A program made the translations under genes and the position numbers. Shown one piece after another: positions 29,525 to 61,600 of a stretch of 64,000 nt of DNA; position 1 is the stretch's first letter; every line of letters begins with the position of its first letter. The notes beneath the pieces are model-generated. The model saw only the letters and a list, made by a program, of their open reading frames with translations. It was not told the origin of the DNA and searched no databases. Source of the DNA: Macrostomum hystrix (lineage: Eukaryota; Animalia; Platyhelminthes). The stretch spans positions 8,122,001-8,186,000 of the forward strand of contig CATNEN010000025.1 in NCBI GenBank assembly GCA_950097015.1. The letters are read 5' to 3'.

Positions 29525-30510
29525 CTGCTGCGATTCTAGCTGCGATTCTAGCTGCGATTCTAGCTGCGATTCTAGCTGCGATTCTAGCTGCGATTCTAGC
29601 TGCGATTCTAGGTGTGATTCTAGGTACCATTCTAGCTGCGATTCTAGCTGCGATTCTAGCTGCGATTCTAGGTGTGATTCTAGGTACGATTCTAGCTGCG
29701 ATTCTAGCTGCGATTCTAGCTGCGATTCTAACTGCGACTCTAGCTGCGATTCTAGCTGCGATTCTAGGTACCATTCTAGCTGCGATTCTAGCTGCGATTC
29801 TAGCTGCGATTCTAGGTGTGATTCTAGCTGCGATTCTAGGTGTGATTCTAGCTGCGATTCTAGCTGCGATTCTAGGTACCATTCTAGCTGTGATTCTAGC
29901 TGCGATTCTAGCTGCGATTCTAGCTGCGATTCTAGCTGCGATTCTAGGTGTGATTCTAGCTGCGATTCTAGGTGTGATTCTAGCTGCGATTCTAGCTGCG
30001 ATTCTAGGTACCATTCTAGCTGTGATTCTAGCTGCGATTCTAGCTGCGATTCTAGCTGCGATTCTAGCTGCGATTCTAGGTGTGATTCTAGGTACCATTC
30101 TAGCTGCGATTCTAGCTGCGATTCTAGCTGCGATTCTAGCTGCGATTCTAGCTGCGATTCTAGCTGCGATTCTAGCTGCGATTCTAGCTGCGATTCTAGC
30201 TGCGATTCTAGCTGCGATTCTAGCTGCGATTCTAGCTGCGATTCTAGCTGCGATTCTAGCTGCGATTCTAGCTGCGATTCTAGCTGCGATTCTAGCTGCG
30301 ATTCTAGCTGCGATTCTAGCTGCGATTCTTGCTGCGATTCTAGCTGCGATTCTATCTGTGATTCTAGCTACGATTCTAGCTGCGATTCTATGTGCGATTC
30401 TAGGTGTGATTCTAGGTACCATTCTAGCTGCGATTCTAGCTGCGATTCTAGCTGCGATTCTAGCTGCGATTCTGTCTACAATTACAGCTACGATTCCTGC
30501 TGTGGTTAAA
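29525..30510. repeat. 12-bp tandem repeat GCGATTCTAGCT
   Basis: Reverse complement AGCTAGAATCGC differs by one base from the 4.0-7.1 kb unit. Confidence 0.95.
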
Positions 30511-30842: not shown

Positions 30843-31014
30843 TTAAGATAATGACTTCGAATTTTTTTCTGTCGAACGAAGCTTGATAACTTTCGTGCGA
30901 GTTAGAAAATTGTCAGAGAGCTTCGTTATATTCTCGATTTTTATAACAATAAAAACTATATTTTTATCTATCATTTTCACAATCATACGCGCTCGTAGAT
31001 GTTTACAAACAACG

Positions 31015-32083: not shown

Positions 32084-33457
32084 TTCCGGGTGTCCGGAAA
32101 GTCATGAGAAAACTACAAAAGGTTAATTATAAAAACGCGCAGACCAGTGAAACTTTACTAATCAGTAATGTAATTTCCCCTGAAGTCAATCACAGATTGG
32201 CAGTGCTCCACGAGCCGTAGAACCTCGCGTTTCAAGCAGTTTGCATCCAGACCCCTCGCCCACTGCAACGCGGCCTCGCGGACCTCATCGTGGCTGCTGA
32301 ACTCCCGCTTCGAGAAGTCCGATTTCAGCCAATTGAAGAAAAAACGGTCGCATAAATTGAAATCAGGGCTGTAGGGACTCTGAAAAAGCAGTTGAACTCC
32401 ACGAGTCTCCATGTACTGCTGCACAGGCTGGGCCACATGAGGTCGTGCGTTGTCCCACTGCCACAAGACTTCGGACAAATGAATTGGCTGTGATCTGAGG
32501 CTCCGCCATAGGTCACCTGTGTGTCGAACGAATTCAACGATGCGATTGGCATCAACAGTCTGCTTTGGCGCCGTTGACATGATAGAGAATCTCTTGCTTG
32601 GGGTGAAAGCGACTACCAGCATTGTCTTTATTGGGTCCCCGACTGAGTGTCTCACAACTTGAGGTCTATGGTCGCCTTGACCCAGCCAGCACCGGTTGTT
32701 CTGCCGTGTACCAGTGTTTTTAAGGTACACCCACGTCTCGTCCTCCACCACGTACTTGTTGCAGAAGCTGGTCATGCCCTCGGTATGAAAAATCCGACGA
32801 ATTTGCTTGGCACAATTGACGCGAGCAACCTTGTTCTCTTCGGAGAGAACATGCGGGACCCACACGGCAGACACATTGCGAAGTTGCAGGTCTTCAGTCA
32901 ATATTTCATGCACTGTTGATTTCCCAACCTCCATGAAGTCAGCAAGATCTCTGACACTCACTTTTGGGTCTTCTCTCACGAGATTTCTGCAGGTCTCGAT
33001 CAGCTCTGGTGTTCTCGTCGATCTCGGCCGGCCAGTACGGGCAGCTTGGGCCAGTGGGTACGACTCGTCACGGAACCTTGTGTACCATCGGTACACTGAC
33101 GACAGACCAGGCGCCACATCTCCATGCACATTCAGCAGTTCTCCATGGCAATCAGGAGCACATATACCAAGCTTATACCTGGTATAAGCATAAGCTTGAA
33201 ACTCGTCCATCTCAAAGCAGCAGCAAGGATCAATGAAGAAAAAAGTAACGATAGATGCTTGCTTTGCCTCTGCGTTGCAGTGGCCTAGACTTCTAAGTTA
33301 TAACCATCAGCCTTACCCCCAAATTTGAAGCTAGAATCTAGCTCTTTCAGCCATAGACATATATTAAGTCAAGTGTTAAAATGGTACAGTATCTTGTCAA
33401 TAGCTTGTGTCTAAGTAGTTAGAATAACACATTCTCATGACTTTCCGGACACCCGAA
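32084..33457 (-). mobile_element. Tc1/mariner DNA transposon, DD34D mariner type, apparently intact
   Basis: Perfect 24-bp inverted repeats CGGGTGTCCGGAAAGTCATGAGAA at 32087-32110 and 33432-33455, extendable by TT(C); they enclose the transposase ORF. Confidence 0.95.
32158..33210 (-). CDS. Mariner transposase (350 aa)
   Basis: N-terminal HTH region with GRPR; WVPHVL; EDETW; WDNARPH; YSPDFNLCD; 34 residues counted between the second and third Asp. Confidence 0.96.
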   Translation of the reverse strand: MDEFQAYAYTRYKLGICAPDCHGELLNVHGDVAPGLSSVYRWYTRFRDESYPLAQAARTGRPRSTRTPELIETCRNLVREDPKVSVRDLADFMEVGKSTVHEILTEDLQLRNVSAVWVPHVLSEENKVARVNCAKQIRRIFHTEGMTSFCNKYVVEDETWVYLKNTGTRQNNRCWLGQGDHRPQVVRHSVGDPIKTMLVVAFTPSKRFSIMSTAPKQTVDANRIVEFVRHTGDLWRSLRSQPIHLSEVLWQWDNARPHVAQPVQQYMETRGVQLLFQSPYSPDFNLCDRFFFNWLKSDFSKREFSSHDEVREAALQWARGLDANCLKREVLRLVEHCQSVIDFRGNYITD

Positions 33458-36900: not shown

Positions 36901-37451
36901 ATGTCCGCCAAACCGCGCGCCGGTTCGCTGCATCCTGCGACGCGCGGCGGTTCCAAGACTGGAGGCTCGCGGTCGCGCTTGAAAAGCGACGCCGCCGTCT
37001 TGTCCGCAGCGGCCGCGTTCGCCAGCGGTCAGGCCGGCTGGCCGGATGAGGCAACAGCGGCTGCGGCCGCGGCAGCCGCCGGCGCACCAGACCCTGCCAA
37101 AGAGGTCTTCCACCGAGTTCGAGTTCAAATCCAGACTCCGCAGGCTCCGCCGGATCTTCTGCTGTGCTTCGCCGGACCGAGGCATCGCGGCTCGGACGAC
37201 CATACTGAGGCCGGCGTCGCGGCGGCTGCTATGTCAGCGGACGGCGGAGGCGCCACCGGGCGACGGACTCCGGGCAGGTCTCGCGGCGCGTCCATTGCGC
37301 CGGCATCTGTCTCATCCGCTGCGGCCTCAGCTAAGTTCGCGTCGTCGTCGAAAAAGTTGCCAGCAACGCTGGAGAGCGGCGGCGGCGGAGGGTCAGGTTC
37401 GGCTCGCCCGCTGTCGGTTCACTCCTCAGCTGATGAGGCTCAGCAGCTGGG
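36901..37451 (+). CDS. ADGB: ADGB exon 1 (low-complexity N-terminus)
   Basis: ATG-initiated GC-rich ORF; phase-2 GTAAGG donor matches the exon 2 acceptor phase; downstream of the X-boxes; no recognisable motif, so the assignment rests on position and phase. Confidence 0.65.
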
Positions 37452-40400
37452 GTAAGGCGACGATGGAGCTGCGATTCGAATGATTGTCAGCCGATTCAGT
37501 TGTCTTGGAAACCGTTGTCAAGCGGGTGGAATCTTGTCAGTAAAGTCAGTAGATACTTTTCTAGAAAAGCCAGGATCCGTATCCTCCAGTCCGCGGGCAA
37601 AATGCGGCCCTCGATGCTGCTGAAGTCAGCCTCCTACAACATCTATGAGCAATCATCCCATATCTGCCGTATCTCATCTCTCCTGTGTCTCATATCTGTT
37701 CCGTGTCTCATCTCTCCCCAGTCTCATCTCTCCTCTGTCTTATCTCTCCCGTGTCTCATCTCTCCCGTGTCTTATCTCTCCCGTGTCTTATCTCTCCTGT
37801 GTCTTATCTCTCCCGTGTCTTATCTCTCCCGTGTCTTATCTCTCCTGTGTCTTATCTCTCCCGTGTCTTATCTCTCCCGTGTCTTATCTCTCCCGTGTCT
37901 TATCTCTCCCGTGTCTTATTAATATGTCCTATTAAAATACGAAATAAACAAACGAGGCGCCGGACGAGGTGCCAAAGCCAATGAATGAGCGGGTTTCTTG
38001 AGGGTTTCTAGAGGGTTTCCTGAGGGTTTCATGAGGGTTTCTAGAGGGTTTCGAGAGGGTTTCTAGAGGGTTTCTAGAGGGTTTCGAGAGGGTTTCTAGA
38101 GGGTTTCTAGAGGGTTTCTAGAGGGTTTCTAGAGGGTTTCTAGAGGGTTTCTAGAGGGTTTCTAGAGGGTTTCTAGAGGGTTTCTAGAGGGTTTCTAGAG
38201 GGTTTCTTGAGGGTTTCTAGAAGGTTTCTTGAGGGTTTCATGAGGGTTCTTCAGGGTTTCTAGAGGGTTTCTAGAGGGTTTCTATAGGGTTTCTATAGGG
38301 TTTCTAGAGGGTTTCTAGAGGGTTTCTAGAGGGTTTCTAGAGGGTTTCTATAGGGTTTCTAGAGGGTTTCTAGAGGGTTTCGAGAGGGTTTCTAGAGGGT
38401 TTCTATAGGGTTTCGATAGGGTTTCTATAGGGTTTCGAGAGGGTTTCGAGAGGGTTTCTAGAGGGTTTCGAGAGGGTTTCTAGTGGGTTTCTAGAGGGTT
38501 TCTAGAGGGTTTCTAGAGGGTTTCTATAGGGTTTCGAGAGGGTTTCTATAGGGTTTCGAGAGGGTTTCTATAGGATTTCTAGAGGGTTTCGAGAAGGTTT
38601 CGAGAGGGTTTCTAGAGGGTTTCGAGAGGGTTTCTAGAGGGTTCAGGGCGCAACTGAAGCTTACTGATCGTTAGTCAATTTTCGTCGGCGAGTGTAGAAT
38701 TAAAAAATTCGCTGGGAAGATAGCTCAGACAGGGACGGAGTCCAGTCACGCAACGTCAGGTAACTCGTAGGTGGAAATTTCTGACTGCTCAGGGAGACTC
38801 AGCGCGTGACTAAATCAAAGGAAGGCCGACTCAAGACTGCAACCCGGTCACACACTAGCCTATGCCGGGATCTGGCTGAATTAATTTGTGAAATCGTTAA
38901 ATTTTTAATGCCTTCGGGTGCTTCCGGACAGTGTACAGATCTCTACAGAAATCTCTCCCGTGTCTCATCTCTCCCTAGTCTCATCTCTCTCGTGTCTTAT
39001 CTGTTCCGTTTCTCATCTCTTCCGTGTCTTATCTGTTCCGTGTCTCATCTCTCCCTAGTCTCATCTCTCTCGTGTCTCATCTCTCCCGTGTCTCATCTCT
39101 CCCGTGTCTCATCTCTCCCGTGTCTCATCTCTCCCGTGTCTCATCTCTCCCGTGTCTCATCTCTCCCGTGTCTCATCTCTCCTGTGTCTCATCTCTCCCG
39201 TGTCTCATCTCTCCCGTGTCTCATCTCTCCCGTGTCTCATCTCTCCCGTGTCTCATCTCTCCCGTGTCTCATCTCTCCCGTGTCTCATCTCTCCCGTGTC
39301 TCATCTCTCCCGTGTCTCATCTCTCCCGTGTCTCATCTCTCCCGTGTCTCATCTCTCCCGTGTCTCATCTCTCCCGTGTCTCATCTCTCCCGTGTCTCAT
39401 CTCTCCCGTGTCTCATCTCTCCCGTGTCTCATCTCTCCCGTGTCTCATCTCTCCCATGTCTCATCTCTCCCGTGTCTTATCTGTTCCGTGTCTGATCTCT
39501 CCCTAGTCTCATCTCCACCCAGTGAGTACTGTTTTTTTTGGCTTTCCTGTTAGGCCCGCGATGCAAATAGGGTGGCAACCCCTGTTTTAAAAAACATAAT
39601 TCTGTAGAATTGCTTAAACTGACCCTTGGCCATGACTATATTTGACGAACTGATAGGGCCGATTTTGATAGAAAATTGCTTACATTTATATTTATATCCA
39701 GAGCGGGCAAAAAAATGCGAAACACCGTTTCCTTTTCATGGATTTGAAATATCCCATTTCGGGATCTGAACGGGCAAAGAGGATCCAAGTCTAGGGAAGA
39801 AGATGACACATACCGTGCGTGTCGAATTTTCTTCCTTTCCCACTCGCAGCCGCCCCCACCTCCGCCGCCGAGTCCGCCTCATCTTGCAGTCACCGCGATT
39901 CGTTTTCCCCCTATCCCATTTTGTTTTAATACTAGTCGTCACGCGAATCGTCACGAAATAATCCCCAAAATCCCCTTTGTAGGATTCGGGCTCTGGTTGG
40001 GTCTGGCCAGTGCTTTGAGGGCGTGGCACTGCAGCTAATATTTTACATATTTTAAGTGTTAAGCTCAAATAATACAATTTGTAAGGGAGATTATAAGGGG
40101 TCAGTGGCAGAGCGGTCTAAACCATTTGCCTCTCGCACCAAGGTCCCTGAGTTCGATTCCGCGGCGAGTCCACATTAATTTCTGTCGCAGCCGCAGTGCG
40201 AAGACTTTGAGGAATTTTCGCCATTGATAGCCAACCTCCAAGGCACAGTGAGAGTGTACACTGCCTGACGATGAGAAAGTCAGGGCAGTTGTACACACCT
40301 GAGGGCTCAGGAGTCAGCGAAACGGGCTGAATTGCCTCCTTGCTTGCTGCGTGTCATCAAATAATGTGAGATTGGCAACTTCACAGCAAGCATCCCACTT

Positions 40401-43400
40401 TCTCTCTTATATAGACCATCAATTCATTCACATGTTCTCATTTTCCAAGCTAGTCAGCATTGACTCAGTGACTCCCTAACCACCCCACTTCACCTCCTCC
40501 CAGCCAAGATCGGAAGAGAATAGAAAGAAGGGAGCTGGGAAATGACCGAGTAGCCGGGGGGGGGCGAATAAAAAAGGTAAGCAATGAGCCAAAAGCATCT
40601 GCGAGAGAGAAAGAGGGAGAGAGAGACTTGGGGGGGGGGCGAAGTGGCCTGCCAGACCGGCTATGCAGAATGATGAATCGCCTGTTCTGATCCAGGAAGT
40701 GCCCAGCGCTCTCTCTCTCGCACACCCACTCCGTGCAAGCAGTCCCGCCTCCTGATTTTTACCCCATACCCACGTGTTCGCCTTGCAAACCAGCCGAGCC
40801 CTCATTATTTACGACTATGGCTCAGGTGCTCAAACTGGTTGAGCATAGACGGAGGCAGCGGATGCGGAGAGGAGAGACGAGGCAGCTAGAGTATAGGGAT
40901 GAGTGGAGGTGGGTGGAGGAGCCTCTATACTTTTTTTTCTCTACCTTTCGACTAGAAGCCAGAGCCTCACAAATTACTTCGGGCTTCGGGTTGAGAAGGA
41001 TTGTCGGACCTGTCCGGCTGTCTCTCCGTCTCACGTTGCGCTCATCCGCGCCTAAAATCCTCCCTTTTTGACAACGAACAAATCCCTTTCTCCCTTTGTG
41101 ATTTTTTTCTTGGTTCACAAAAGGTGACTGATAATGGTCAAGAAAGCCCCCAGCAAGTCCGAGGCTCAATCCCTACTACTCACCGATTTTGTGCTCACAA
41201 TTCTCAGTTTTCCTCAGACCATGACACCCACCCCAGCCCATTTTATAGCCTCAGTGCGTTTCCTAATTACCTAGCTGCTTCTTCTACTTGACTACGTGAG
41301 GATTAGCACGGACTCTCACGCACTCAGACTCACACAATACTCTAATCCGTTTACTAAAACTTATATATGTAAGATTTTGAAGTCGATACAATACTATCCT
41401 GCATCCCTCTTTCAGTTACCCCCCATTCCCCGTCCTTCAGTAACTCCATTCCCCGTCCTTCAGTTACCCCATTCCCCATCCTTCAGTTACCCCATTCCCC
41501 GTCCTTCAGTAACTCCATTCCCCATCCTTCAGTTACCCCATTCCCCGTCCTTCAGTTACCCCATTCCCCATCCTTCAGTTACCACATTCCCCATCTTTCA
41601 GTTACCCCATTCCCCGTCCTTCAGTTACCCCATTCTCCATCCTTCAGTTACCCCATTCCCCGTCCTTCAGTTACCCCATTCCCCGTCCTTCAGTTACCCC
41701 ATTCCCCATCCTTCAGTTACCACATTCCCCATCTTTCAGTTACCCCATTCCCCGTCCTTCAGTTACCCCATTCTCCATCCTTCAGTTACCCCATTCCCCG
41801 TCCTTCAGTTACCCCATTCTCCATCCTTCAGTTACCCCATTCCCCGTCCTTCAGTTACCCCATTCCCCATACTTCAGTTACCCCATTCCCCATCCTTCAG
41901 TTACCCCATTCCCCGTCCTTCAGTTACCCCATTCCCCGTCCTTCAGTTACCCCATTCCCCATCCTTCAGTTACCCCATTCCCCGTCCTTCAGTTACCCCA
42001 TTCCCCATCCTTCAGTTACCCCATTCCCCATCCTTCAGTTACCCCATTCCCCGTCCTTCAGTTACCCCATTCCCCATCCTTCAGTTACCCCATTCCCCAT
42101 ACTTCAGTTACCCCATTCCCCGTCCTTCAGTTACCCCATTCCCCATCCTTCAGTTACCCCATTCCCCATCCTTCAGTTACCCCATTCCCCATCCTTCAGT
42201 TACCCAATTCCGCATCCTTCAGTTACCACATTCCCCATCTTTCAGTTACCCCATTCCCCGTCCTTCATTCACAGTTTCCCATCCTTCATTCACAGTTTCC
42301 CATCCTTCATTCACAGTTTCCCATCCTTCATTCACAGTTTCCCATCCTTCATTCACAGTTTCCCATCCTTCATTCACAGTTTCCCATCCTTCATTCACAG
42401 TTTCCCATCCTTCATTCACAGTTTCCCCATCCTTCATTCACAGTTTCCCCATCCTTCATTCACAGTTTCCCCATCCTTCATTCACAGTTTTCCCATCCTT
42501 CAATCGCAGTTTCCCCATCCACCATCTTTATCCCTCTTTTTCAATTAAGATTTTCTGTAGAGATCTGTACACTGTCCGGAAGCACCCGAAGGCATTAAAA
42601 ATTTAACGATTTCACAAATTAATTCAGCCAGATCCCGGCATAGGCTAGTGTGTGACCGGGTTGCAGTCTTGAGTCGGCCTTCCTTTGATTTAGTCACGCG
42701 CTGAGTCTCCCTGAGCAGTCAGAAATTTCCACCTACGAGTTACCTGACGTTGCGTGACTGGACTCCGTCCCTGTCTGAGCTATCTTCCCAGCGAATTTTT
42801 TAATTCTACACTCGCCGACGAAAATTGACTAACGATCAGTAAGCTTCAGTTGCGCCCTGAACCCTCTAGAAACCCTCTCGAAACCCTCTAGAAACCCTCT
42901 CGAAACCCTCTAGAAACCATCTAGAAACCCTCAAGAAACCCTCAAGAAACCCTCAAGAAACCCTCAAGAAACCCTCAAGAAACCCTCAAGAAACCCTCAA
43001 GAAACCCTCAAGAAACCCTCTAGAAACCTTCTAGAAACCCTCTAGAAACCCTCAAGAAACCCTCTAGAAACCCTCTAGAAACCCTCTAGAAACCCTCTAG
43101 AAACCGTCTAGAAACCCTCTAGAAACCCTCTAGAAACCCTCTAGAAACCCTCTAGAAACCCTCTAGAAACCCTCTAGAAATCCTCTCGAAACCCTCTAGA
43201 AACCCTCTAGAAACCCTCTAGAAAGCCCTGAAGAAACCCTCTAGAAACCCTCTAGAAACCCTCAAGAAACCCTCTAAAAACCCTCTAGAAACCTTCTAGA
43301 AACCCTCTAGAAACCCTCTAGAAACCCTCTAGAAACCCTCTGGAAACCCTCTAGAAACCCTCTAGAAACCCTCTAGAAACCCTCTAGAAACCCTCTAGAA

Positions 43401-44497
43401 ACCCTCTAGAAACCCTGAAGAAACCCTCTAGAAACCCTCTAGAAACCCTCTAGAAACCCTCTAGAAACCCTCTAGAAACCCTCTAGAAACCTTATAGAAA
43501 CCCTCTCGAAACCCTATAGAAACCCTCTAGAAACCCTCTAGAAACCCTCTAGAAATCCTCTCGAAACCCTCTAGAAACCCTCTAGAAACCCTCTAGAAAC
43601 CCTGAGAAACCCTCTAGAAACCCTCTAGAAACCCTCTAGAAACCCTCTAGAAACCCTCTAGAAACCCTCTAGAAACCCTCTAGAAACCTTATAGAAACCC
43701 TCTCGAAACCCTATAGAAACCCTCTAGAAACCCTCTAGAAACCCTCTGGAAACCTTATAGAAACCCTCTCGAAACCCTCTAGAAACCCTCTCGAAACCCT
43801 CTCGAAACCCTCTAGAAACCCTCTAGAAACCCTCTAGAAACCTTATAGAAACCCTCTCGAAACCCTATAGAAACCCTATAGAAACCCTATAGAAACCCTA
43901 TAGAAACCCTATAGAAACCCTATAGAAACCCTATAGAAACCCTCTAGAAACCCTCTCGAAACCCTATAGAAACCCTATAGAAACCCTATCGAAACCCTAT
44001 AGAAACCCTATAGAAACCCTATAGAAACCCTTAGAAACCCGCTCATTCACTAGCTTTGGCGCCTCATTTTTTTATTTCGAATTTCGAACAGTTTTTGTCG
44101 CTAAAATCGAGATGGGTAAATTGTATTTGATACACAAAATCTAGCTCGTAGCAAATTTGATAAATTCAATTCGTTTTCTATTTAAGGTTGGTTTCATCAA
44201 TAGCAGGTAAATTGATTTAATCTGCATAATCTGTATACAGGAAATCTTCAATTGCTGATAGAAGCTATCGAGCTCTCGAGCCTTGAAGACTGATACATTT
44301 TTTTCTGCTCTGGTTTCTGGTTTCCAAGGCCCCAGCTTACCTCTAATCCTTATCGCTCAGTCTCCCAAACTGGGCGTGGTTGAAAAAGAAACACAAACAC
44401 AACTGTTAGGGCAAATACTAGCGGGATAAAACTAGAAGCAGAAGGGGGAAATTTGATATGGGGAAGAAATACGAGGATATTATCGATGAGTTTTTTG

Positions 44498-44535
<38 letters not shown>

Positions 44536-47500
44536 ATTACAGATCCCCAGATTAAATCCCTAAGAGTATAGTTGGGGCTAACAATGCGCAGTCGATATGA
44601 TAAGCCGATTTCTTCGATTTTACCTATTCAATATGAATCTATTCGCTGAGCATAGAGACTGTATAGAGAATATTGAGGTGCGCAGCAGCAGCGGTGAGAA
44701 TTGGATGCTTGATTAAAACTGTGGGGGAAAACTAGGGATCACAGTTGGGAGAATGGGATAGGATCTGATGGATTGGGAATAATCAAGATGTGGCGAGAGA
44801 AACAGTAAGATCAGTGTCTTGATCGGTATCGAGTGACAAGTGAGAGGGATATTTTGGAAAAATTGAAGCCAGTCAGAGGGAGATTTCGGGAAAACTGAGG
44901 GGGAAGTCAGAGGGAGATTTCGGGAAAACTGACGGGAAGTCAGAGGGAGATTTCGGGAAAACTGACGGGGAAGTCAGAGGGAGATTTCGGGAAAACTGAA
45001 GGGGAAGTCAGAGGGAGATTTCGGGAAAACTGACGGGGAAGTCAGAGGAGATTTCGGGAAAACTGAAGGGGAAGTCAGAGGGAGATTTCGGGAAAACTGA
45101 GGGGGAAGTCAGAGGGAGATTTTGGGATAACTGACGGGGAAGTCAGAGGGAGATTTCGGGAAAACTGAGGGGGGAAGTCAGAGAGAGATTTCGGGTAAAC
45201 TGAGGGGGAAGTGAGAGGGAGATTTCGGGAAAACTGAGGGGGAAGTCAGAGGGAGATTTTGGGATAACTGACGGGGAAGTCAGAGGGAGATTTCGGGAAA
45301 ACTGAGGGGGGAAGTCAGAGAGAGATTTCGGGTAAACTGAGGGGGAAGTGAGAGGGAGATTTCGGGAAAACTGAGGGGGAAGTCAGAGGGAGATTTTGTG
45401 AAAAAAGCTGGAGTGACTCATGCAAAATTTGCATGCGCACCTGCATTGCATACTCAGACACAGGAAATGAATTTTTGAGACTAAAAAAAATTGAAGACCC
45501 CTCAAAAAATGTGATTTCAGTTTCTCACACCAAGGCCTCCAGCTGCCCCAGGTGGGCGAGGACTCGCGGGTGTACCAGGTGTGGCCGGAATTCAACGAGG
45601 CCGAAGTCAACAATGAGAAATGGGTGAGTTGGGCAACCGCATGATCAGGGGATGCCAATAATTAACTCCCTGGCTCGCACTAGGCAGGTGGGAACAAGGT
45701 GCGGCGTAGGCAGAGGAAGCCGGCTTGGGTGGGATTTTTCCCCCACTGGCGAGAGTCGGAATCCCAATTAATTTTTTTCCTCCCCTTCACTGGACTAATT
45801 GGCATCTGCGCTCTTTCTTCCTCTTCCTCCTTCTCCTAGTAGATTCGGTTCCAGTCTATTGGCGGCTTGGGGCACGACACAGACGTTGCGGTGGAAGATT
45901 CAGCAAGAAATAGAGAAAGTGATGAGTAGAAAGAAAGAAGCGGAAAAATTTGATTTGAGATCTCCCTCTGGGAGTTGGGAATTCTCAGCGACCAGATTTC
46001 TATTATTAGCATCTCCACCTAACCGGGGGATTCCAAATCCCATGTGTACAGGTGCAATCCCAATGATTTTGAGGATATTTAAGGATTTTTTATGAGCAGT
46101 TGCATACGGCTGTTCTGTCCACGGACTGGGGGACGCCACAAACCCTCAATTATCCCGTCAGAGCCAGCATCGTCGAGATATCCCCGGGGTATTTCTACTG
46201 TTAAACAGCTGGATAGAGTGAAGCGACGCACAGTTAAGTGTTTTGCTAATAGGATGCTGAGTCGGGATTCGAACTCCTGACCTTAATTTCAAGAATCCGT
46301 CTCTAGAACCAGAAACCCACCTAATGGAAAGAACCGAGTCTAAGTCAGTTTAGCTCAGGCTTTTAAGCTTAGAGAAAAGGTAGAGCAAGGACTGCTCACC
46401 TGGGTTGTGCCCATACGGTCTCAGCCAGGAACATGAGCCCCTCCCACCGGCCCAGCCAATCAGAGCCGAGCAGCTCAATTGCAAGCCGTTCTGGACCCGC
46501 ATCCAGTGTCTCACAATGTCCCGGCTGAGATAGCCTCATCCTCCGCTTCCAAGTTGCCGGCTCTGCTTCGAGAGAAAGGAAGAGAGAGAGAGAGAGAACT
46601 CGCTCTCACAAAGGTGGAAGAAGGATGGTGGACAGGGAAGGTAGAGGAGCAGACCCAAGCCGACGCCCTTGAGCACCCACCCCAACGCCGCCAAAATCCC
46701 CGCCCACCCCACCGGAGCACAGGTTGACGGATTGGGGTTGGCGCGAGCTGTGTCCCAATTAGAAAAAGGTATTTCACATTGTGCTCACCGAGGAACATTT
46801 TGCTAAGTCTGGAGGGCGGGGCTTCGGCCCCCCAGCACCATGTGAGCAGGGCAAAATCGATTTTATTTATTTTCATCCCAATTATCTAACTGAGGACTCA
46901 ACAATCGGGCATCAGCAACAGGGAGGCGGCAGATCAAAGGGCACCGATAAGGCGCCGAAGGGGACTGGAGGTGCGGCTGCTGCTGCTGCTGCTGCTGCTG
47001 CCGCGGTATGTATACAAATGCTTGATGCAAGAATAGTTACTGGTGCTGTGTTAGACACTCACTAGCTTGTGTTAGATACTCACTAGATTGTGTTAGACAC
47101 TCACTAGATTGTGTTAGACACTCACTAGATTGTGTTAGACACTCACTAGCTTGTGTTAGACACTCACTAGATTGTGTTAGATACTCACTAGATTGTGATA
47201 GACACTCACTAGCTTGTGTTAGACACTCACTAGGATGTCTTAGACACTCACTAGATTGTGTTAGATACTCATTAGGTTGTGTTAGACACTCACTAGATTG
47301 TGTTCTAATTAAGATTGTGTTAGACACTCATTAGGTTGTGTTAGACACTCACTATATTGTGTTAGACACTCACTATATTGTGTTAGACACTCACTATATT
47401 GTGTTAGACACTCACTAGGTTGTGTTAGACACTCACTAGGTTGTGTTAGACACTCACTAGGTTGTGTTAGACACTCACTAGATTGTGTTAGACACTCATT

Positions 47501-47805
47501 AGGTTGTGTTAGACACTCACTATATTGTGTTAGACACTCACTAGGTTGTGTTAGACACTCACTATATTGTGTTAGACACTCACTAGGTTGTGTTAGACAC
47601 TCACTATATTGTGTTAGACACTCACTAGGTTGTGTTAGACACTCACTAGATTGATTAGACGATGACCACGAAACATCATTGCCTGCAGGCAACTCAGCAG
47701 TACTTCGAAGATCCAGACGGTCCTCTGATGATGCCTCAAGCACTGAGGCCAACACGTTGGGTGCGACCGATGGAGTGGTGGCAGCAGCAGCAGCAACAAC
47801 AACAA

Positions 47806-47855
<50 letters not shown>

Positions 47856-47874
47856 GCAACAACAACAACAACAA

Positions 47875-47910
<36 letters not shown>

Positions 47911-48026
47911 CAGAAACAGCAACAGCAACAAAAGCAACAGCAGCAGCAGCTGCAACAGCCAGCAATAAATTCCCAGCAACAAAAACAGCAAGAGAAACAG
48001 TTGACCCAGCCTCAGAAGCAGCAATC

Positions 48027-48079
<53 letters not shown>

Positions 48080-51000
48080 TAGACGAGCCAGCTCCAGTGC
48101 CAACCGTCGTCGACGGTGAAAACGGTGGCTACTTCAGCTTCGATCTTATGTCCACAAATGAGCACATTTTGCATTGCGAGGTATGAACATATTTAAACAA
48201 AAATATTATTTGCTATACCTTTTTTCTGCGTAAGTTTTTGACTTCCCCAAAAATCACAATCATTTTCTTTTTATCCGTTATCTCTCACTCTCTTTATCGC
48301 TAACTTTGCATGTCACTCCATTTAAATTACCCCTACTATCTGTCACTATCTGTCACTCCTCTTATCTGTCACTCCTCATATCTGTCACTCCTCTTATCCG
48401 TCACTACTCATATCTGTCACTCCTCTTATCTGTCACTCCTCTTATCCGTCACTCCTCTTATCTGTCACTCTTATCTGTCACTCTTATCTGTCACTCCTCT
48501 TATCTGTCACTCCTCTTATCTGTCACTCCTCTTATCTGTCACTCCTCTTATCTGTCACTCCTCTTATCTGTCACTCTTATCTGTCACTCTTATCTGTCAC
48601 TCCTCTTATCTGTCACTCCTCTTATCTGTCACTCCTCTTATCTGTCACTCCTCTTATCTGTCACTCCTCTTATCTGTCACTCCTCTTATCTGTCACTCCT
48701 CTTATCTGTCACTCCTCTTATCTGTCACTCCTCTTATCTGTCACTCCTCTTATCTGTCACTCCTCTTATCTGTCACTCCTCTTATCTGTCACTCCTCTTA
48801 TCTGTCACTCCTCTTATCTGTCACTCTTATCTGTCACTCTTATCTGTCACTCCTCTTATCTGTCACTCCTCTTATCTGTCACTCCTCTTATCTGTCACTC
48901 CTCTTATCCGGCACTCCTCTTATCCGTCACTCCTCTTATCTGTCACTCCTCTTATCTGTCACTCTTATCTGTCACTCCTCTTATCGCTCACTCTTATCTG
49001 TCACTCCTCTTATCGCTCACTCTTATCTGTAAATTGTCTAGCCCGTTCTCTCATTTCGATAGTTTTAATTCTCGTTATCAATTCTCAATCCTTTCAATGT
49101 CACTCCGTACATACAGCTACTTAGGATTAGAATTTTGAAATGGCAGCATCCCCATGTGTGCTCAATTAGGAGAATTCTGTTCCGAGCACGATTCCATTAA
49201 AGGCAGCGAAAATAAAATGAAAATGAGGAAGAAATTTGCTTCGCAGCTTAAAGCGGGGAAGCTCACGAGATGCGGGGGATGAAAAAAATGGGAGAGAGGA
49301 AAAATATGTGAGTTCATGTGCCAAGCGGATTAGAGGAAGAACTTTCGTCGCTATTCCACCTGTCCCAGTCTAATCTATAGACCTGGCTGGCAGGGCTGAG
49401 ATAGCGACAGGGAGTCATGGATCAGGATTAGAAAGGCAAGGAGGAGATAATGATGGGGCAGCGAGAGGCTGGGCAAGCCTTTTGGGAAGCCCGCAGAGAA
49501 GAAGATTGAAGGGATTTGAATCAGTCAGTCAATCAGTCAGCCAGTAGGATTGCTCCCTCACCCTAGTCGTTATCCTGACCCTAGATCAACTCTCGCACAC
49601 GAAATGATGAAAGTATGGATTTATTACACATACATATATATATATAAATCGAAGACCCCCTGCATGCTCGCATTACCATTCAGAAACTAAAATAAATGAG
49701 AGTATGAGCTGGAGGTTAGAATTAAATAGAATACTATCGGGTGAGGACAAAAATAATTATCCTAGGTGGGTGTGAGCAGGGAATAATCCATCAGCTAAGG
49801 GATCAGAACTGACAGCCGCACTACTCAGCCCCGCAAACTGGTTTAACCGAAAAAAAATTTACTGAAGCAAATTAGACTAATCAAAATCCCATATTTCCAG
49901 TAAAACTCACCTGCTACACCGGCCCCAATACCCAATTTCAGCAGTCCTAGCTCAGTGGGCTGTCAGGGGCCATTTCCTGAGTCCATTATTAAATTGCCGC
50001 TGAGTCTCTCACCGGCCCGGGAAAAAGAAACAAAAAAATACTTCCTGTGGATTCTGGAGCAGAGATTTTTTTGCTGTGCGTGTCAAAAGCCCGGAAAAAA
50101 CGAAGCTTAGTTAGCGTCGGTCTGTCATTCCGCTTTCCCTCTAATTGGGATTCAAATTACTCAAGGGCCTCTCTTTTTATCTAAGGCGTCTAATTTTAAC
50201 ACCTTTGAGTGCCACCTTGCCTTGTCCTCCTATTTCTCTTTGATGCTTTCCTGTCTATTTTGTCGCGAGCGGCCTAAATAGCAAATCCAATGCAGATATA
50301 ATGACTCAGTAGGTTCATGCCTGCGTTTAACATTCAATATTGCTGAACAGCTACAAGAAAGGCAACTTAAAAAGAGGCTTAGAATAGTTATCAGATTTAA
50401 GCGCTTAAGCTTTTGCGTGGAGTAAGTGATTCTAAACACAGCAACGATATCGTTGACCAATCAGCTAACAACCGTTTAGCAAAAATTAGACCGGGTGACT
50501 CATAATAATCTATTCAATCCCAACATCGCTGGCCAATCAGCGCACAGAAAAGTTCTCAACAAGTTTCTATAAATAGATTCCGCAATAATAAATAAAGTGA
50601 CTCATTTTTCACCCACTCCAAACATTTGGCATCGCTGGCCAATCAGCGCGCAGCAAAGTTCTTAGCAAGTTTCTATAAATAGATTCTACAAAAATGAATC
50701 AAGTGAGTCACTTTTCATCCACTCCAACTCTTTAGCATCGCTGGCCAATTAGCGCACAGCAAAGTTCCAAAGAAGTTTCTGTAAATGGAAATCACAAAAA
50801 TGAATTAAGGAATCCAATTCACCCACCCAACCCCTTAAAAATCGTTGTCCCATCAGCGCGCCGGAAAATATCTTAAAAAGACCAACCTTTTAATCCCACA
50901 GCTGATCAGGTGGATTGTGACGCAAGTGGATGCACTTTTCCGACTTCACGCGGTGAAAGCTACGGGAAGCGAACCGTCAGAAGTTCTCGTCTCACCCGGC

Positions 51001-52644
51001 GGTCTGGTGTTCGGCTTCAGGCCCTGGGAGCACATCTACTCGGTTGGCAAGCTGGGAAAGGCGCCAAACATTCCACTGTACAATCCCTACGGGAAGTACA
51101 TTGTACGACTATTCTGGCTGGTGAGTTTGATGGGTTAAATTTTGGTCATCAACAAAGATCGCAAAATTGAAATGAACTGATTTGCAGGGCCAGTGGCGGA
51201 AGATCTACGTGGATGACAGTCTGCCGTTGGACGAGAACGACAAGTGCCTGCTGCCCATGACAACCCGGCCTTTGGAGCTGTGGCCAGCTCTCCTTAGCAA
51301 AGCTCTAATTAAAGTAGCAGCTCTAGAGTAAGCTCATTAATAAATTCCTACTGTTTCATCTTCAGTAGAGCTACTGATGAAAATATTGGCAAATAAATGA
51401 CTGGAATTTTCAATGGCCTCAAACAGCTATGGAGGCGGCAGCGGAACACAAGAGTTTGGCGACTTCAGCCCGATCCACTGCCTCACCGGCTGGCTGCCGC
51501 AAACCATTGCTGTCAGGTGATTTTTCCCCTGGGCGAAATTCACGATTGCTTTCAAACCGAATGACCGATTTTCATGAAAGTCCAGGTTGAATATTTTAGG
51601 AGTCTAATAAATAATGTGATTATTTGAAATGCCACGTAGTCTTTCTACCGTTAACGGATAATGCCCAACTTGAAGTAGTCAGGAAGTTAACAATAATGTT
51701 TTCAACACTCTTTAGAAAGGAGAGCTGCGAAAAATTGTGGCAGCTTCTGCAGAGAATTCTACCCAAGTGGAAGCCGCCAGAGATTAATAATAAAACTGCT
51801 GCGGAAGAGACAGTAAAACCTGACGGATTGGTAAGATTGCTGATTGATTAGAATTTAGATGGATTAATTTTCTACCCCAAACTTTCCTGTGATTGGCTGA
51901 GAAAATTCTTTCTCGTACTTCTACCCCGAACTTGCATCTCATTGGCCGAGAAAAGTCCTAATTACTTTTACCCCAAACTCGTCTCTGATTGGCTAATAAA
52001 ACTTTGCATCATTAACACTAAGTTTTTGCTTATTATTTATCACTTATTTGCGCCCCTACAGGCACAGGAACAGTCAGACAAGCTACATGCTTCAGACAGC
52101 AAACCATCGGTCAAGATAAGTTCTGACGGCAAAGCAAAAGGCAAATCAACTGCTTATTATAATATCAAATATGCATCATAATAGTAGAAACCAGTGTAAC
52201 AAATTTCTGATACATTTTTTATTAGGCAAGGAAGACAAGAAGCCGACTAGAAGTGAAAAAAATAGTAAGTGTAAATCTCTTCGATGCCCCTACTGATTAC
52301 CTCGATGACCTCCCAAATAACCAACTCTATGACCTCCCTAAATGACAAGCTATATGAATTCAAACCTCTCTGAACTTAACAATAATAATAATACTTTCTG
52401 GATGGCTGTGGACAATGGAGCATCATTTGGTGACACTAGACCCGCAGCCAGCGAGGAGGCAATTCTGCCCATTTCGCTGACTCCGCGGCTGCGACTTAAA
52501 TGAATGTGGCCTCGCCGCGGAATCGAGCTTAGGGACCTTTGGTGCGAGAGGCAAACGTGTTAGACCGCTCTGCCACTGACCACCCCTCACTATCTGACCT
52601 TTCTACTGAAAACGATCTTCAACTTTCTAGAAGAAGACCCATCT

Positions 52645-55600: not shown

Positions 55601-58600
55601 ATTTGAATTGAGATTCTAAGAATGAGGGAGATGAGAAGCTGAAGAGAAGCTGAGAAATTGAGACTCCAAGATTTTGTGATCTGATGGTATGAAACATTAG
55701 TTCTTGTTAGCATTGATTTATATTTATAAAGTTATCAGCAAAATAAAAAACATGTCATTCCTTCATTACAGCTGCATCCATGTCTATCACAAAGTGAGCA
55801 GTTATCAGTTCAAGCACACGTTCACCGATCTAAGAGTAAGCATCTACTAACTTCGCTTTTGGGAAAAATCACGGGTATTTAAATGTGAACCAAAATGGAT
55901 TAGCCATAGAGGTTCACACAGTGGCGGCGCAGCACCTCCAGCTGGGGGGCGGTGGTTGGGTGGTCACCCCCCCCGGCCACCAAAAAAAAAAGGTCTCAGG
56001 TGACCACCCCCATGCCCCATGGGGTGACCACACTTTTGAAAAAATATGGTAAAGTACCAATTTTTTTTAAGTGGGTGGTCACCCCCTGAGGGTGGTGAGG
56101 GTGGTCACCCGGGGGCAGCCCGCCCCCCCCCCCCCGCCCCCCCCCTGCGCCGCCACTGGGTTCACACATAGCAATGTTAGTTGCCCTTGTCACCAGGGTC
56201 TTTGACAAGAATCGCTGAGTATGTTAGAAATTTAGTTCATCATAATCATAAGCGGAAAATTTTGATCCAAATGATGGAACTTAACGAAAATCAGTCATTC
56301 GGTTCGGGAGCAAATCGTGAAGTAGGCAGTGGGTATTTGAAATACCCTGTGGTCTTTCCCCAGGGTAAAAAAGCGTGTTTAAGCATGTTTAACTGTAACC
56401 GATACCAACAGAGCATTGCGCCCTCGTCAGCAAAGGATGCCACACCAAGCAAAAAGGCAGTGGCCAGCGGCAGCGGCGGAGTTGTAAGTCAACGATTTAA
56501 AAAAATAATGACTAAAAATGGTTGAGGAGACACGAGTATAAAAATAATTGCAGTCACCAAACTTGCTGTGCTAATTAAAGTAGAAATATGAGAATGCGTA
56601 TGACTTAAATTAATAAAATGATCCTTTAGCAGGCGCACAGCGACCGGGATGATCGTAGCAGCACTCAAGGACCCATCTACCTGTTCGTAGACTCGCTAGC
56701 GCCAACTGAGATCATCCTGAGCATGTCTGTGCTCAGCCGATGGCCTGAGACCTACTCGGCAGTCAATGCTGCTAGTTCTTCTGCCAGAGTAGGCGGAACA
56801 TCAGTTGTCGCCGACGAGGCAATCAACTCGATGGTTGGGACTACAGCGAAGCCGAAGGATCAGCTGGTACCCGGAAGCTGCGTTGCTGGTACGAACCATA
56901 TAAATGTAATCGGATATTTCTATATTTCTGGTTCGATGTGAAATCAGATGGTTCTATGTGAAGTCAGATGGTTCGATGTAATTCATGTCTAAGCTTAGTT
57001 TCTTCTATTCTGCCTGCAGAGCAGCACAGCTGGAAGTCCTCCCGCCTCGGTCAACAGTTCAAGCGACTCCGCACAACGGGCACCAAGGCGATGTCACTTC
57101 AGCTGCCGGCCGGACGGCACACTCTGCGCCTGTCCGCCCGAGCTCCTGCCGCATTCGTCTGCTGCTTGGCTTCGGCCAGCGAATTCTTCGCCGGCACTGA
57201 GGAGGAAATTCTGCCGCTGTTGAAGTCGACCCCAGTGCGTCAGCAGCAATGGGCCACCAGTTTCAGTCGGGCTCTAGCTGAGCTAATCGACGTGTTTGAC
57301 AGCGAAGAGAAGATCGGCGTCAATCTGTCCAAGGCCGAAACGGCTCTGTGGCGTCTCCATGGAAACGACGCCAGCGTCGGACGTCCCAGAGAGCGTCGAC
57401 AACATCGAGAGAATTTCAGAGCTGTCATGTACGACCTGCTGGGCCGGGCGCTGGAAGGGGCGCCATTTGACGAGGCCGCTGAGTCCGTGCTGGCCTGGAG
57501 GTTGCTACTGTGCGACCCCGCGACACCCAATCCGCTGCACCTCGGGTTTCGACAGCTGAGGCCCGGGACGGCTCGGAGTGAGTGACGTCATTGACGCTAT
57601 TTGTTAATTAATAATTAATTGTACTCGTATAATAATTAATCAATGCAATATTAATAGCCGACATGGCTACATGGTGAAACTTTGTGAGCAGAAAAACGAA
57701 GCCTTTTTCGGTCTTTGAATCATAAAATAACTCGCCGATGCCTATGTTATTTGACACGGGAAGTTGTTTCATCGGCTTTTGCAGAAAATTTTAGCCTGGG
57801 TTCTGGGTTTTCCTGGCAATTGGTGAAATATTTTGGAATATTCGAGTAGAAAGAAAGAAAATGTGGGTATTTAAAATGGCCGCCATGGTTTTTTTACTGT
57901 CAAAAGAAAATTTATATACGAGTTCTACCAAAAATTGGCCAATTTCGAGTTCACAAAAGCACCTGCAATTTGCCTGGGCCGCGCAGAGTCGTCGGGTGTC
58001 CAGCTGGCGCAGCCGACGCCGCAGCCGACGCCGCATCCGACTGGTCGAGGCCGCGGGAAACAACAAGCCGCAGCCGCCGCAGCCGCCGCAGCCGCAGCAG
58101 CCGCAGCGGCCGCTCACGAAGCCGAGCACTCGCCTGAGCTGGACTTGCTTGAAAGTGCGTTTCGCTAAAAACAAAACTTTTTTCGAGCATCCCTCCCAAG
58201 ACAAGACTTGAACGCCTTGAAACTCAATATTCAAATTTCAACATCCGCAATCAGGGCTAGAGCGGGACCCGGACAGCTGGCTCAATCGAGCACCAACACC
58301 GGCGGACCATCTGGCAGCCGTTCGTCTGCAGCGGTGCTGGCGTGGTGCCCGAACTCGCCGGCTGTTGCGAGTCAGACAAGGCGGCGGCTCGCAGCCTGAG
58401 ACGCGCCGCGCCGTCGAACGACTGCGTCGCGCCTGGCGCCGAGTTGAATCGATTGGCGCCGAGGAGCTGAGCCTGCGCCTACTCCGCCAACTCATCGCCA
58501 TCCAGCCCGATGGGACACCGACGCTGCCGTTGCTGCCTCTGGCCCAGGACCAGGCCGGTCGAGCCGCTTATCGGGACTTTTTCGGCGCCTGCCCGGAGCA

Positions 58601-61600
58601 GGCGGCGGGCACCGGTCCCTACCCAGTGTTCCGCGAGATCCTTCGACCCAGCGCCGACTGCACCGTGCTGGTGCGGCTGACTAGCAGTCTACCCAGCTGC
58701 CACCTGCGCATTCTGGACAATGACAATGGCTATCGGGAGCTGGAGCGCGGTCTCGGCCACAGGATGCCGGCTCATCGACTTCGCGGCGGGGGCCGGCGCG
58801 GATACACTTTTCTGGCGTTGGCCACTGCGCCGGTGGACCGACCGGCACCGCCCGGACGGTGGCGCCTTCGACTGATTGGAGACGATACCGAGTCACTGCC
58901 GACACCTCTGCTGCACGGCAGAACGACCGATTTGAATGCAAACTTTTCCATTCGACAAGTGCAGGTTAGTTAGTTGTCGATGTACACTTGTACACTACCT
59001 AACGGGGGGTCGGTGGCAGAGCGGTTATCGCGTTTGCCTCTCGCATCACGGTCCCTAAGTTCGATTCCACGGTGAGGCCACATTTATTTGGGACGCTGCT
59101 GCGGAGAGAAGGCTTGAGGGCTTGTCGTGCAATTTATGCCCTTGAGGGCCAACCTCCAAGGCACAGTGAAATGTACACTGCCTGACGGTGAGAAAGTCAG
59201 GGCAAATGTACACACCTGTGTGAGCGTGTGCCTGCGTACAGTATCTGTGTGCGTGTGTGCTCAGGAGTCAGCGAAATGGGCAGAATTGCCTCCTCGCTGG
59301 CTGCGGGTCTAGTGTCACCAAATGATAAGCCATTGCCTGCAGCCCTCTAGCCATTATTATTATCATTTCCAGGGCTACTACGTCCCGGATCAGCAAGGCC
59401 GAGGCGTACTATTTCGTCAAAGCGTTCGAGTCACTGAGGATCACCTTGCCACAGTGCATCTTCGCCTCTCAAATCCGGGACTGATGGTGGCCCTGGAGAT
59501 TCTGGACAATGAACAGGTGGTCCTCGCTGTCGAGGGTCGAGGCCAGGCCCTTCTGCCGGCGTTTATCTTCGCCAGGGATAGCGGCGGACGGCGATTAGAC
59601 GGCGACGCGACAGAAGAACCGGTTTCAGCCACGTCTCCCAGCAGAAGCCCGTCCCGGAGTTCCGGTGGACCAACAGCGCGCAGTTCCAATGTAAGGGGCC
59701 ATGCACCTGGTCAGCGCGGACGCGGCGGCAGTAAGGAAGGAAAATTGTCGGTGAGTTCAAGTTTTTTTAATTAATGCCTGATAAAAAAATGCTTAATGTG
59801 CTCTAATATAACCTACTCCAGCTAATAAGCGAGGACTTTGAAATGTTCAGTCTGAAATAAATAAATTCCTGTCACCAGCCAGCCAATAAGCGAGGACTTT
59901 CTACTGCTTAGCTTTTAATCAATAAAATTTCTATCCTGAGCCAGCCAATAAGCGAGGACTTTCTACTGCTTAGCTTTTAATCAATAAAATTTCTATCCTG
60001 AGCTAGCCAATAAGCGAGGACGTTCTACTGCTTAGCTTTTAATCAATAAAATTTCTGTCCTGAGCTAGCCAATAAGCGAGGACTTTCTACTCCTTAGCTT
60101 TTAATCAATAAAACTTCTGTCCTGAGCCAACCAATAAGCGAGGACTTAAGACTGTTCCGATTTTTATCGATAAATTTATGTCCCCAGCCAGCCAATAAGC
60201 GAGGACTTAAACGTCCGATATTTATCGATAAATTCCTGTCCAGGTCTAGCCAATAAGCGGGGACTTCAGACTGTTCAGCTTTTAATCAATAAAACTTCTA
60301 TCCTGAGCCAACCAATAAGCGAGGACTTTGGCCTGTTCAGTCTTTAGGAGCTAATTCCTGTCCCCCATCAAGAAAACGACAAGGCAAAAAAAAAATTAAA
60401 ATAAAATTAAATTAAATTAATAAAAAATAGCGGCACTATTTTTATAGCACGCTAGCAGCGTCTCCAGCACGACACCGGATCTCATAGATTCCGATGGCGA
60501 GCCGCATAAGTACATCATCCAGGCCAGACTGCTGGATTCCGTTTGGCCCCTCACTGCGGATAACTGGGCTATTGTTCAACAGGTGCAGGAGCAGAACAAA
60601 GAGGACTTGAAGGGTAGGCATTCGGCATGGATATTTGACAGTTTTTAACATTCAAGAAGCAACTTGCATTTTTATCTCTCCCGTCAGTGTTCTCAAAGCC
60701 GAGAAGTGAGACACGGTTAGAAGATCAGCAGCAGCAGCAGCAGCTGCAGACAAAGACACTGGCCTCTCTAAGCGACGCGCCATCTGCTGCGGCAGCACCA
60801 AAGCGAGCAAGAGGCAGCCGGGCCGGAGGCGGACGTGCAGCTAGCGGAGCAGCCACTGCCGCTGCCACCGCCGCCGCAGACGCCGCCGCAGCCGCTGCAG
60901 CCGCGGCCGCCGCTGCGGCAGCTGCGTTCGACGATCGCAGGGCACACTGGGTGTTGCGTGTGGTGTCGGACGCTGCTCAGGGCGACGGTATCCAGGTCAA
61001 GCGCGACACCGAGGCGGCTGATCGGCTGCGAATGATGAAGCGCGCCTGGGAAGAAATGGAGCCTGGCCGGGCGGAGAAAGCTCGACAGAGTCGCTTGAGG
61101 TACTTAATTACTCATATTAGTGGTCTTTGTTTTATTGTAACGTCCGTTTATTGCCTTGAATATTTCGTACGTTTAGTTACGGTACAAAGACCACTCTTCT
61201 TTCCCTCCGGGGTAAGGTAAGGTAAAGTTGCTGAAACGGCCCTTTTTAGGCACACACGTAGCTTAAGTTTGGAACAAAAACAGAAACAGTTTCAGGGAGA
61301 TTCCTTGACCTGAACGTTGAAGTCTCATATATAATTCCCACAGATTCCTGAGCACCCACATGATAAAAAATCCCAATGCTGGCCAAGACAACCGCCAGCA
61401 GCAGCAGCTATCTGAGCTGCTCCTCGACCGTCCGCCGACGCCGCCGCCGCCCCAGGAGCTGCTCCGACCATTGGATATCGACGCGCTTCAACGAAAGGAG
61501 CCTGGCTCCGATGGCGCTTGCCGACGCAGCTTCGCCGACATTCAAGTCGAGGAGGACGCGGCTGCCGAGGAGCGGATGGCGCGCTTCGCCGACTTCCTGG

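Follow-up and report, generated by a model that had tools for sequence, protein, structure and literature searches.

A foldback-like inverted repeat near the androglobin gene of the flatworm Macrostomum hystrix, read as a local inverted duplication with probable arm-to-arm gene conversion

Foldback transposons such as TU of sea urchins and FB of Drosophila have arms that are built in modules. In Tetris, a foldback element of Drosophila virilis, each arm is composed of a flanking domain, a tandem-repeat domain, and an inner domain (PMC4079207). A structure of similar appearance lies in a stretch of 64,000 nt from the flatworm Macrostomum hystrix (GenBank assembly GCA_950097015.1, C25:8122001-8186000), hereafter called the window. 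It occupies positions 37935-44084 of the window, near the androglobin gene ADGB, and an original prediction made from the letters alone had presented it either as a new foldback family or as two inverted copies of a satellite-carrying mobile unit. Like TU, FB, and Tetris, it has long inverted arms, in which a variable tandem-repeat domain lies between an external piece and a unique inner domain, on either side of a non-coding middle. We conclude that the structure is real but of an ordinary kind, a local inverted duplication accompanied by arm-to-arm conversion. The history that we favor, and consider probable, is a locus-specific, one-off event in which the right arm was copied into the tandem array of a miniature inverted-repeat transposable element (MITE) by template switching or templated repair, the two arms later undergoing gene conversion.

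As for the architecture, a repeat search of the window confirms the two inverted, minisatellite-bearing arms that had been predicted. Positions 38276-38951 and 42552-43227 form a core of 676 nt that is 95% complementary, with a spacing of 3600 nt. This complementarity is far above chance, and the same search returns many shifted array-on-array matches. In full, the left arm extends over 37935-38951 on the plus strand (1017 bp) and the right arm over 44084-42552 on the minus strand (1533 bp), with a spacer of 3600 bp. Read on the same strand, each arm starts with an outer end (56 bp on the left, 44 bp on the right), continues with an array of 11-bp units, and finishes with a unique domain of 311 bp; long inverted arms with a tandem-repeat domain are what a foldback transposon would display. 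Most of the finer details had also been seen correctly, namely an inner domain of about 310 bp that is identical between the arms (311 bp, 100%), outer arrays of very unequal length (653 vs. 1181 bp), and outer ends that match, apart from a 12-bp indel and five substitutions in the 44 bp aligned. The predicted 12-bp period has to be corrected, Tandem Repeats Finder (TRF) reporting a period of 11 bp with the unit GGGTTTCTAGA. Starting at the inner end, the arms are identical over 356 bp; within the arrays, identity then falls to 88-92%. In a map of the array units, only the last four are in register, while elsewhere the two arrays share similar motifs in a different block order.

If the arms belonged to a foldback family, further copies would be expected. 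The genome-wide searches reported here cover the 220-Mb assembly of 42 contigs, and they were run with a 313-bp query for the inner domain, a 40-mer for the 11-bp array (≤2 mismatches), and a 32-mer for the outer end (≤3 mismatches). Both first-look candidates for the inner domain (2/2) are the two arms themselves. The array 40-mer has 103 matches, and all 100 among the matches listed fall in the two arms, while the outer-end 32-mer matches once forward and once reverse, again in the arms. The same kind of search is sensitive, as seen with three positive controls: a short interspersed nuclear element (SINE) with 2696 candidates, a 16-bp array unit with 38,737 matches, and a 12-bp array of the window with 878 matches on many contigs. 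The segment that the original prediction had singled out for a genome-wide search (38641-38953) is found as one inverted pair, at this locus only, and no target site duplication (TSD) flanks the whole structure. A new foldback family is not borne out, as neither the unique domain, nor the 11-bp array, nor the outer end has another copy in the genome. We rejected it because there are no other copies, there is no TSD, and the left arm was inserted alone. The occurrence of just two copies in 220 Mb, together with a left arm that sits by itself within a MITE, instead points to a one-off local inverted duplication.

The solitary arrival of the left arm can be read from its surroundings. The arm is embedded in a hAT-like MITE (37571-39584), recognizable by a family head and tail that flank a 16-bp array whose unit is shared with the family. 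The head in the window aligns with a score of 45 against a shuffle maximum of 26, and the tail aligns to its counterparts at loci L036 (score 41, shuffle maximum 30) and L034 (score 38, shuffle maximum 25); none of 1000 shuffles reached the observed score in any of these comparisons. The 16-bp unit is a dispersed family (the 38,737 genome-wide matches given above were to a 41-mer), and in uninterrupted copies elsewhere the array lies between a conserved head and tail forming terminal inverted repeats (TIRs) that start CAGGGG. These copies are bounded by 8-bp TSDs, GTCTAAAT at L034 (about 1808-2117) and GTTTAGAC at L036 (1695-2481). The head has 1171 candidates in the genome, and all 40 copies that were scored are 100% identical, which shows that this hAT-like MITE family was recently active. 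The copy in the window is an old one, with a diverged head and tail and no recognizable 8-bp TSD. The uninterrupted copies are paralogous empty sites. Beside them, the claim that the left arm splits the 16-bp array as if inserted by itself is correct and proves to be the decisive one: the array breaks off before the arm and resumes after it, with the MITE head on one side and the tail on the other. At the junctions, only 1-2 bp (T or AT) are repeated across the insertion.

This arrangement has two consequences. Since the MITE array and tail follow directly after the left arm, and not beyond the right arm, the two arms did not arrive together. Since the left arm alone interrupts the MITE, it is the derived copy. 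The right arm, which sits in single-copy DNA, is likely to be the parent and is the most economical choice. We find it hardly credible, then, that 37935-44084 as one unit represents a true foldback transposon of the Tetris/TU/FB kind that happens to be single copy in this assembly. Its modular arms (outer end, tandem-repeat domain, and inner unique domain) do reproduce the layout of the Tetris TIRs (PMC4079207), but the arms of such an element would be inserted jointly, and the MITE array and tail lying within the supposed spacer already contradict this, so the arms must have arrived separately. No 8-9 bp TSD brackets the structure: no direct repeat of at least 7 bp flanks it, the longest one between the outer flanks being a misplaced 6-mer. 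Moreover, none of the arm parts has a further copy in the genome, and there is no transposase, in agreement with the original prediction, which saw none between the arms; the open reading frames (ORFs) of the spacer have no Pfam match and no transposase domain.

The discrete insertion of the left arm into a known element could also be taken to mean that each arm, comprising outer end, minisatellite, and 311-bp domain, is a non-autonomous mobile unit of very low copy number, mobilized in trans, which hopped locally into the MITE array. The genome does have active DNA transposons, as judged from the 100%-identical hAT-like MITEs and a Tc1/mariner-type ORF (32158-33210), and hAT and other cut-and-paste transposons often reinsert nearby. 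We nevertheless regard this explanation as quite improbable, because there are only two copies in the genome, one junction carries a 15-bp filler, and the ends of the arm unit are not those of a mobile element. No TIRs were detected within either arm unit, where alignment scores of 7-8 compare with a shuffle mean of 8, and a mobile unit with TIRs was rejected on the ground that the arm-end alignments are no better than those of shuffled sequences. In place of the TIRs and fixed-length TSD left by cut-and-paste transposition, there is only the repeat of 1-2 bp at the left-arm insertion. When the junctions were read, neither arm end had an added A tail. A retroposed copy or SINE origin of the arms was rejected, given that there is no A tail and no TSD, and that ARAGORN and Rfam came back empty in the arms. 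Helitron-type ends are also missing from the arm unit, whose ends read TAATATG... / ...CTACAGAAA along one strand, the complement giving TTTCTGTAG... / ...CATATTA; a Helitron origin, for which we looked at a 5'-TC, a 3'-CTRR, a subterminal hairpin, and insertion at A/T, was rejected on these arm-end sequences. The second option of the original prediction thus survives in part: there are indeed two inverted copies, but their mobility is not supported, as they are two in number, 3.6 kb apart, and without TIRs, TSD, or poly(A).

The junctions are better explained by local copying. In the history that we favor, the parent would be the right arm (42552-44084), a private 11-bp minisatellite with a flank of 311 bp on one side and of ~45-55 bp on the other. 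It would have been copied, reversed, into the 16-bp array of the older hAT-like MITE 3.6 kb away, thereby generating the left arm. The copying may have occurred by a replication or repair template switch, similar to fork stalling and template switching (FoSTeS) or microhomology-mediated break-induced replication (MMBIR), or by templated insertion at a break in an array that is hard to replicate. What is seen at the locus is what such processes would leave, i.e., a template 3.6 kb away, an inner overlap of 1-4 nt, an outer filler of 15 bp, and no element termini. At the inner junction, TCT or ATCT is common to the sequence beyond the right arm and to the MITE array where the left arm stops. No source for the filler at the outer junction was found within the window. 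It is from the combination of a nearby template, inverted orientation, a tandem-array target, short overlap, and filler that we infer template switching or templated insertion, not transposition.

After the duplication, the arms would have drifted apart in the length and unit pattern of their arrays and at their outer ends, and recent gene conversion between the two may have homogenized the innermost 356 bp. The distribution of mismatches is uneven, with 0/356 at the inner end vs. 5/44 at the outer end (Fisher p = 1.3e-5), so that the tract of identity stands well above the remainder of the arms. This contrast is best accounted for by an older duplication with a recent inner conversion tract. 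A recent duplication without any conversion is an unlikely alternative, although it deserves attention. Under it, error-prone copying of low processivity would have produced the filler and the dissimilar array as well as the outer-end divergence and a 12-bp duplication by slippage, and rapid turnover of the minisatellite would have followed. The perfect identity of the inner 356 bp would fit, as would the clustering of all changes towards one junction, beside the filler, since break-induced and template-switch replication produces mutation clusters near breakpoints. However, the arrays differ in block order over their whole length and not in length alone, which would require many separate events, and even for synthesis of the error-prone kind, five substitutions within 44 bp would be many.

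Could the inverted repeat be an assembly artefact, produced by a chimeric fold-back read or a mis-join? The structure rests on a single assembly, and a stretch of 356 bp at 100% identity could also come from a technical copy. Against this, the arms are not alike in array length (653 vs. 1181 bp), unit pattern, or outer ends, unique DNA of 3.6 kb lies between them, and the sequence at both outer junctions is ordinary. The palindromes that arise as fold-back artefacts are near-perfect, with little or no spacer. We consequently hold an artefact to be very improbable. No alternative haplotig of the locus was found in the assembly.

Several points weigh against a one-off duplication followed by conversion. 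The structure itself, the right-to-left direction of copying, and the timing are all inferred from one assembly. The two arms differ by 1 nt in the length of an A run, which leaves the extent of the overlap at the inner junction ambiguous (1-4 nt). Tetris, a foldback element, has arms of the same layout. Finally, a second locus (L042) has the same design, hinting at a recurrent process beyond a single accident. This locus lies 280 kb downstream (C25:8466.5-8471.4 kb) and contains a private 21-bp minisatellite, found nowhere but in two inverted arrays with 2.9 kb between them (3020-4530 / 7403-7871 of L042). Its arms have ~30 bp of matching outer end, with a 16-bp array related to that of the MITE between them. 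A private twin pair with matching 30-bp outer ends is a hint that something recurrent may operate in this flatworm genome. Such a process might copy private minisatellites with a little flank, inverted, into nearby DNA, and so make foldback-like structures de novo, possibly providing raw material for the arms of foldback transposons; we put this forward as a speculative and rather unlikely idea. Within the window, there is no evident excess of inverted array pairs: TRF detects five pairs of arrays with the same unit among 33 arrays, two of which are inverted and three direct. The other inverted pair is formed by 12-bp arrays (4117-7075 / 29527-30473) that are 81% complementary and 22-24 kb apart. 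Since the 12-bp unit is dispersed (878 matches, many contigs), that pair represents two members of a family and not a local duplication.

The features of the locus are listed in Table 1.

Table 1. Coordinates in the window of the two arms, the MITE that hosts the left arm, and the spacer
Feature	Position	Strand	Remarks
Head (5' end) of host hAT-like MITE	37571-37662	+	Homologous to MITE heads at loci L036/L034
Left part of MITE internal 16-bp minisatellite	37663-37919	+	TRF period 16, 15.9 copies
Filler between MITE array and left arm	37920-37934	.	~15 bp, near-palindromic; without right-arm counterpart
Left arm, outer end	37935-37990	+	56 bp; aligns to 44084-44041
Left arm, private 11-bp minisatellite	37991-38643	+	653 bp, 59 units; TRF 59.5 copies and unit map
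Left arm, inner unique domain	38641-38951	+	311 bp; reverse complement of 42552-42862, 100%
Right part of MITE internal 16-bp minisatellite	about 38951-39515	+	TRF; resumes in phase after left arm
Tail (3' end) of host hAT-like MITE	39516-39584	+	Homologous to L036 and L034 tails
Spacer DNA with one tRNA-derived SINE (40097-40375)	39585-41410	.	Otherwise single copy, genome-wide search
Private 23/21-bp minisatellite adjoining inner end of right arm	41411-42520	+	TRF; 34/34 genome pattern matches in this one array
Right arm, inner unique domain	42552-42862	-	311 bp
Right arm, private 11-bp minisatellite	42860-44040	-	1181 bp, 107 units; TRF 107.5 copies and unit map
Right arm, outer end	44041-44084	-	44 bp; flank beyond is single copy

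The content of the spacer is as had been described, with a SINE, unique DNA, and two other arrays, one of 23/21-bp units and one of the 16-bp units. The SINE has readable A and B boxes, and its 2696 first-look candidates in the genome are 76-86% identical. The right outer flank, the non-SINE part of the spacer, and the 23-bp array are each found at a single locus in the genome. ARAGORN found no tRNA gene, and Rfam gave nothing significant, its single match being at chance level (MIR815, E 0.34, 40472-40542, in the spacer). An RNA gene in the 311-bp domain was rejected, there being no Rfam match and no tRNA gene by ARAGORN.

The wider window is rich in repeats. About 41% of it is minisatellite, in 33 arrays with units of 10-62 bp, some of which are private to one locus (11-bp, 23-bp) while others are dispersed families (16-bp, 12-bp). 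The tRNA-derived SINE is present in the window as nine copies or fragments (40097-40375, and at 31010, 33662, 35470, 36143, 52377, 54823, 59004, and 61777), and in thousands genome-wide. The Tc1/mariner-type transposase ORF is located upstream of the inverted repeat on the minus strand (32158-33210) and encodes 350 uninterrupted residues with HTH_32 and DDE_3 domains. A direct repeat of 243 bp (7452-7694 / 9121-9363) is 98.8% identical, and each copy immediately precedes a minisatellite of its own, the unit being 23 bp in one case and 18 bp in the other.

The original prediction had placed the inverted repeat inside intron 1 of ADGB, which we could not verify. The exons were searched one by one, and none was recognized upstream of the structure. 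The gene is on the plus strand, and the inverted repeat lies 7.1 kb upstream of its first recognizable coding exon, a Peptidase_C2 fragment (51182-51331). Domains II, IV, and V map to plus-strand ORFs at 56968-57585, 58365-58973, and 59322-59774. No ADGB match was obtained for the ORFs lying from 45433 to 51170. An Ala/Gly/Ser-rich ORF with an ATG start (36901-37455, plus strand, 184 residues), which lies in GC-rich sequence immediately before the MITE, has no match in Pfam or Atlas; it could be a 5' exon or noise. Matches to the calpain domain with identical scores occur at C10:411802-412625 and C41:265872-266695, which may be haplotigs or a very recent duplication.

The predicted stem in the pre-mRNA is physically possible, provided that the locus is transcribed. 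The arms are predicted to pair over 355 perfect base pairs at -740 kcal/mol, or over 676 nt with 641 pairs at -1251 kcal/mol. If the region is transcribed, a perfect RNA duplex of 355 bp close to ADGB could enter pathways of RNA editing or of small RNAs. Other likely consequences of the inverted arms are further gene conversion and, possibly, inversion of the 3.6-kb spacer by recombination between them, in addition to a long RNA hairpin if there is transcription.

The locus has two broader implications. Because paralogous MITE copies act as empty sites, an order of events becomes legible from one assembly: insertion of the MITE, insertion of the inverted copy, divergence of the arrays, and arm-to-arm conversion, the last steps of which would follow from the reading favored above. 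In addition, what looks like a foldback element turns out to be a single local rearrangement, and it is therefore unfit for inclusion in repeat libraries as a mobile element.

How, then, does the locus compare with described systems? In contrast to Tetris, TU, and FB, there are only two arms in the genome, there is no TSD, and the left arm is alone inside a MITE; the repeat unit is of 11 bp, as against about 220 bp in Tetris. The likeness to Tetris is a resemblance without membership, the TSD, the family, and the joint insertion all being absent here. MITEs with internal tandem repeats are well known and have been reviewed (PMC9659126). The element at 37571-39584, with its family head, 16-bp array, and tail, is of this type; it is the host of the left arm and does not include the arms themselves. 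With short-range inverted insertional duplications (FoSTeS/MMBIR and templated insertions), the locus shares a nearby source, 3.6 kb away, an inverted orientation, and a repetitive target tract. It also shares a junction overlap of 1-4 nt with a short filler and no element termini, the mechanism in our case being deduced from the junctions alone. Most templated insertions on record fall far short of 1 kb, and differ in this respect from the copy described here. Gene conversion between arms is known from the palindromes of the human Y chromosome and from plastid inverted repeats. Unlike in those systems, the scale is tiny, the tract comprises only the inner part of the arms, and the arms contain no genes, but the signature is the same, a perfect block of 356 bp in inverted arms that have otherwise diverged.

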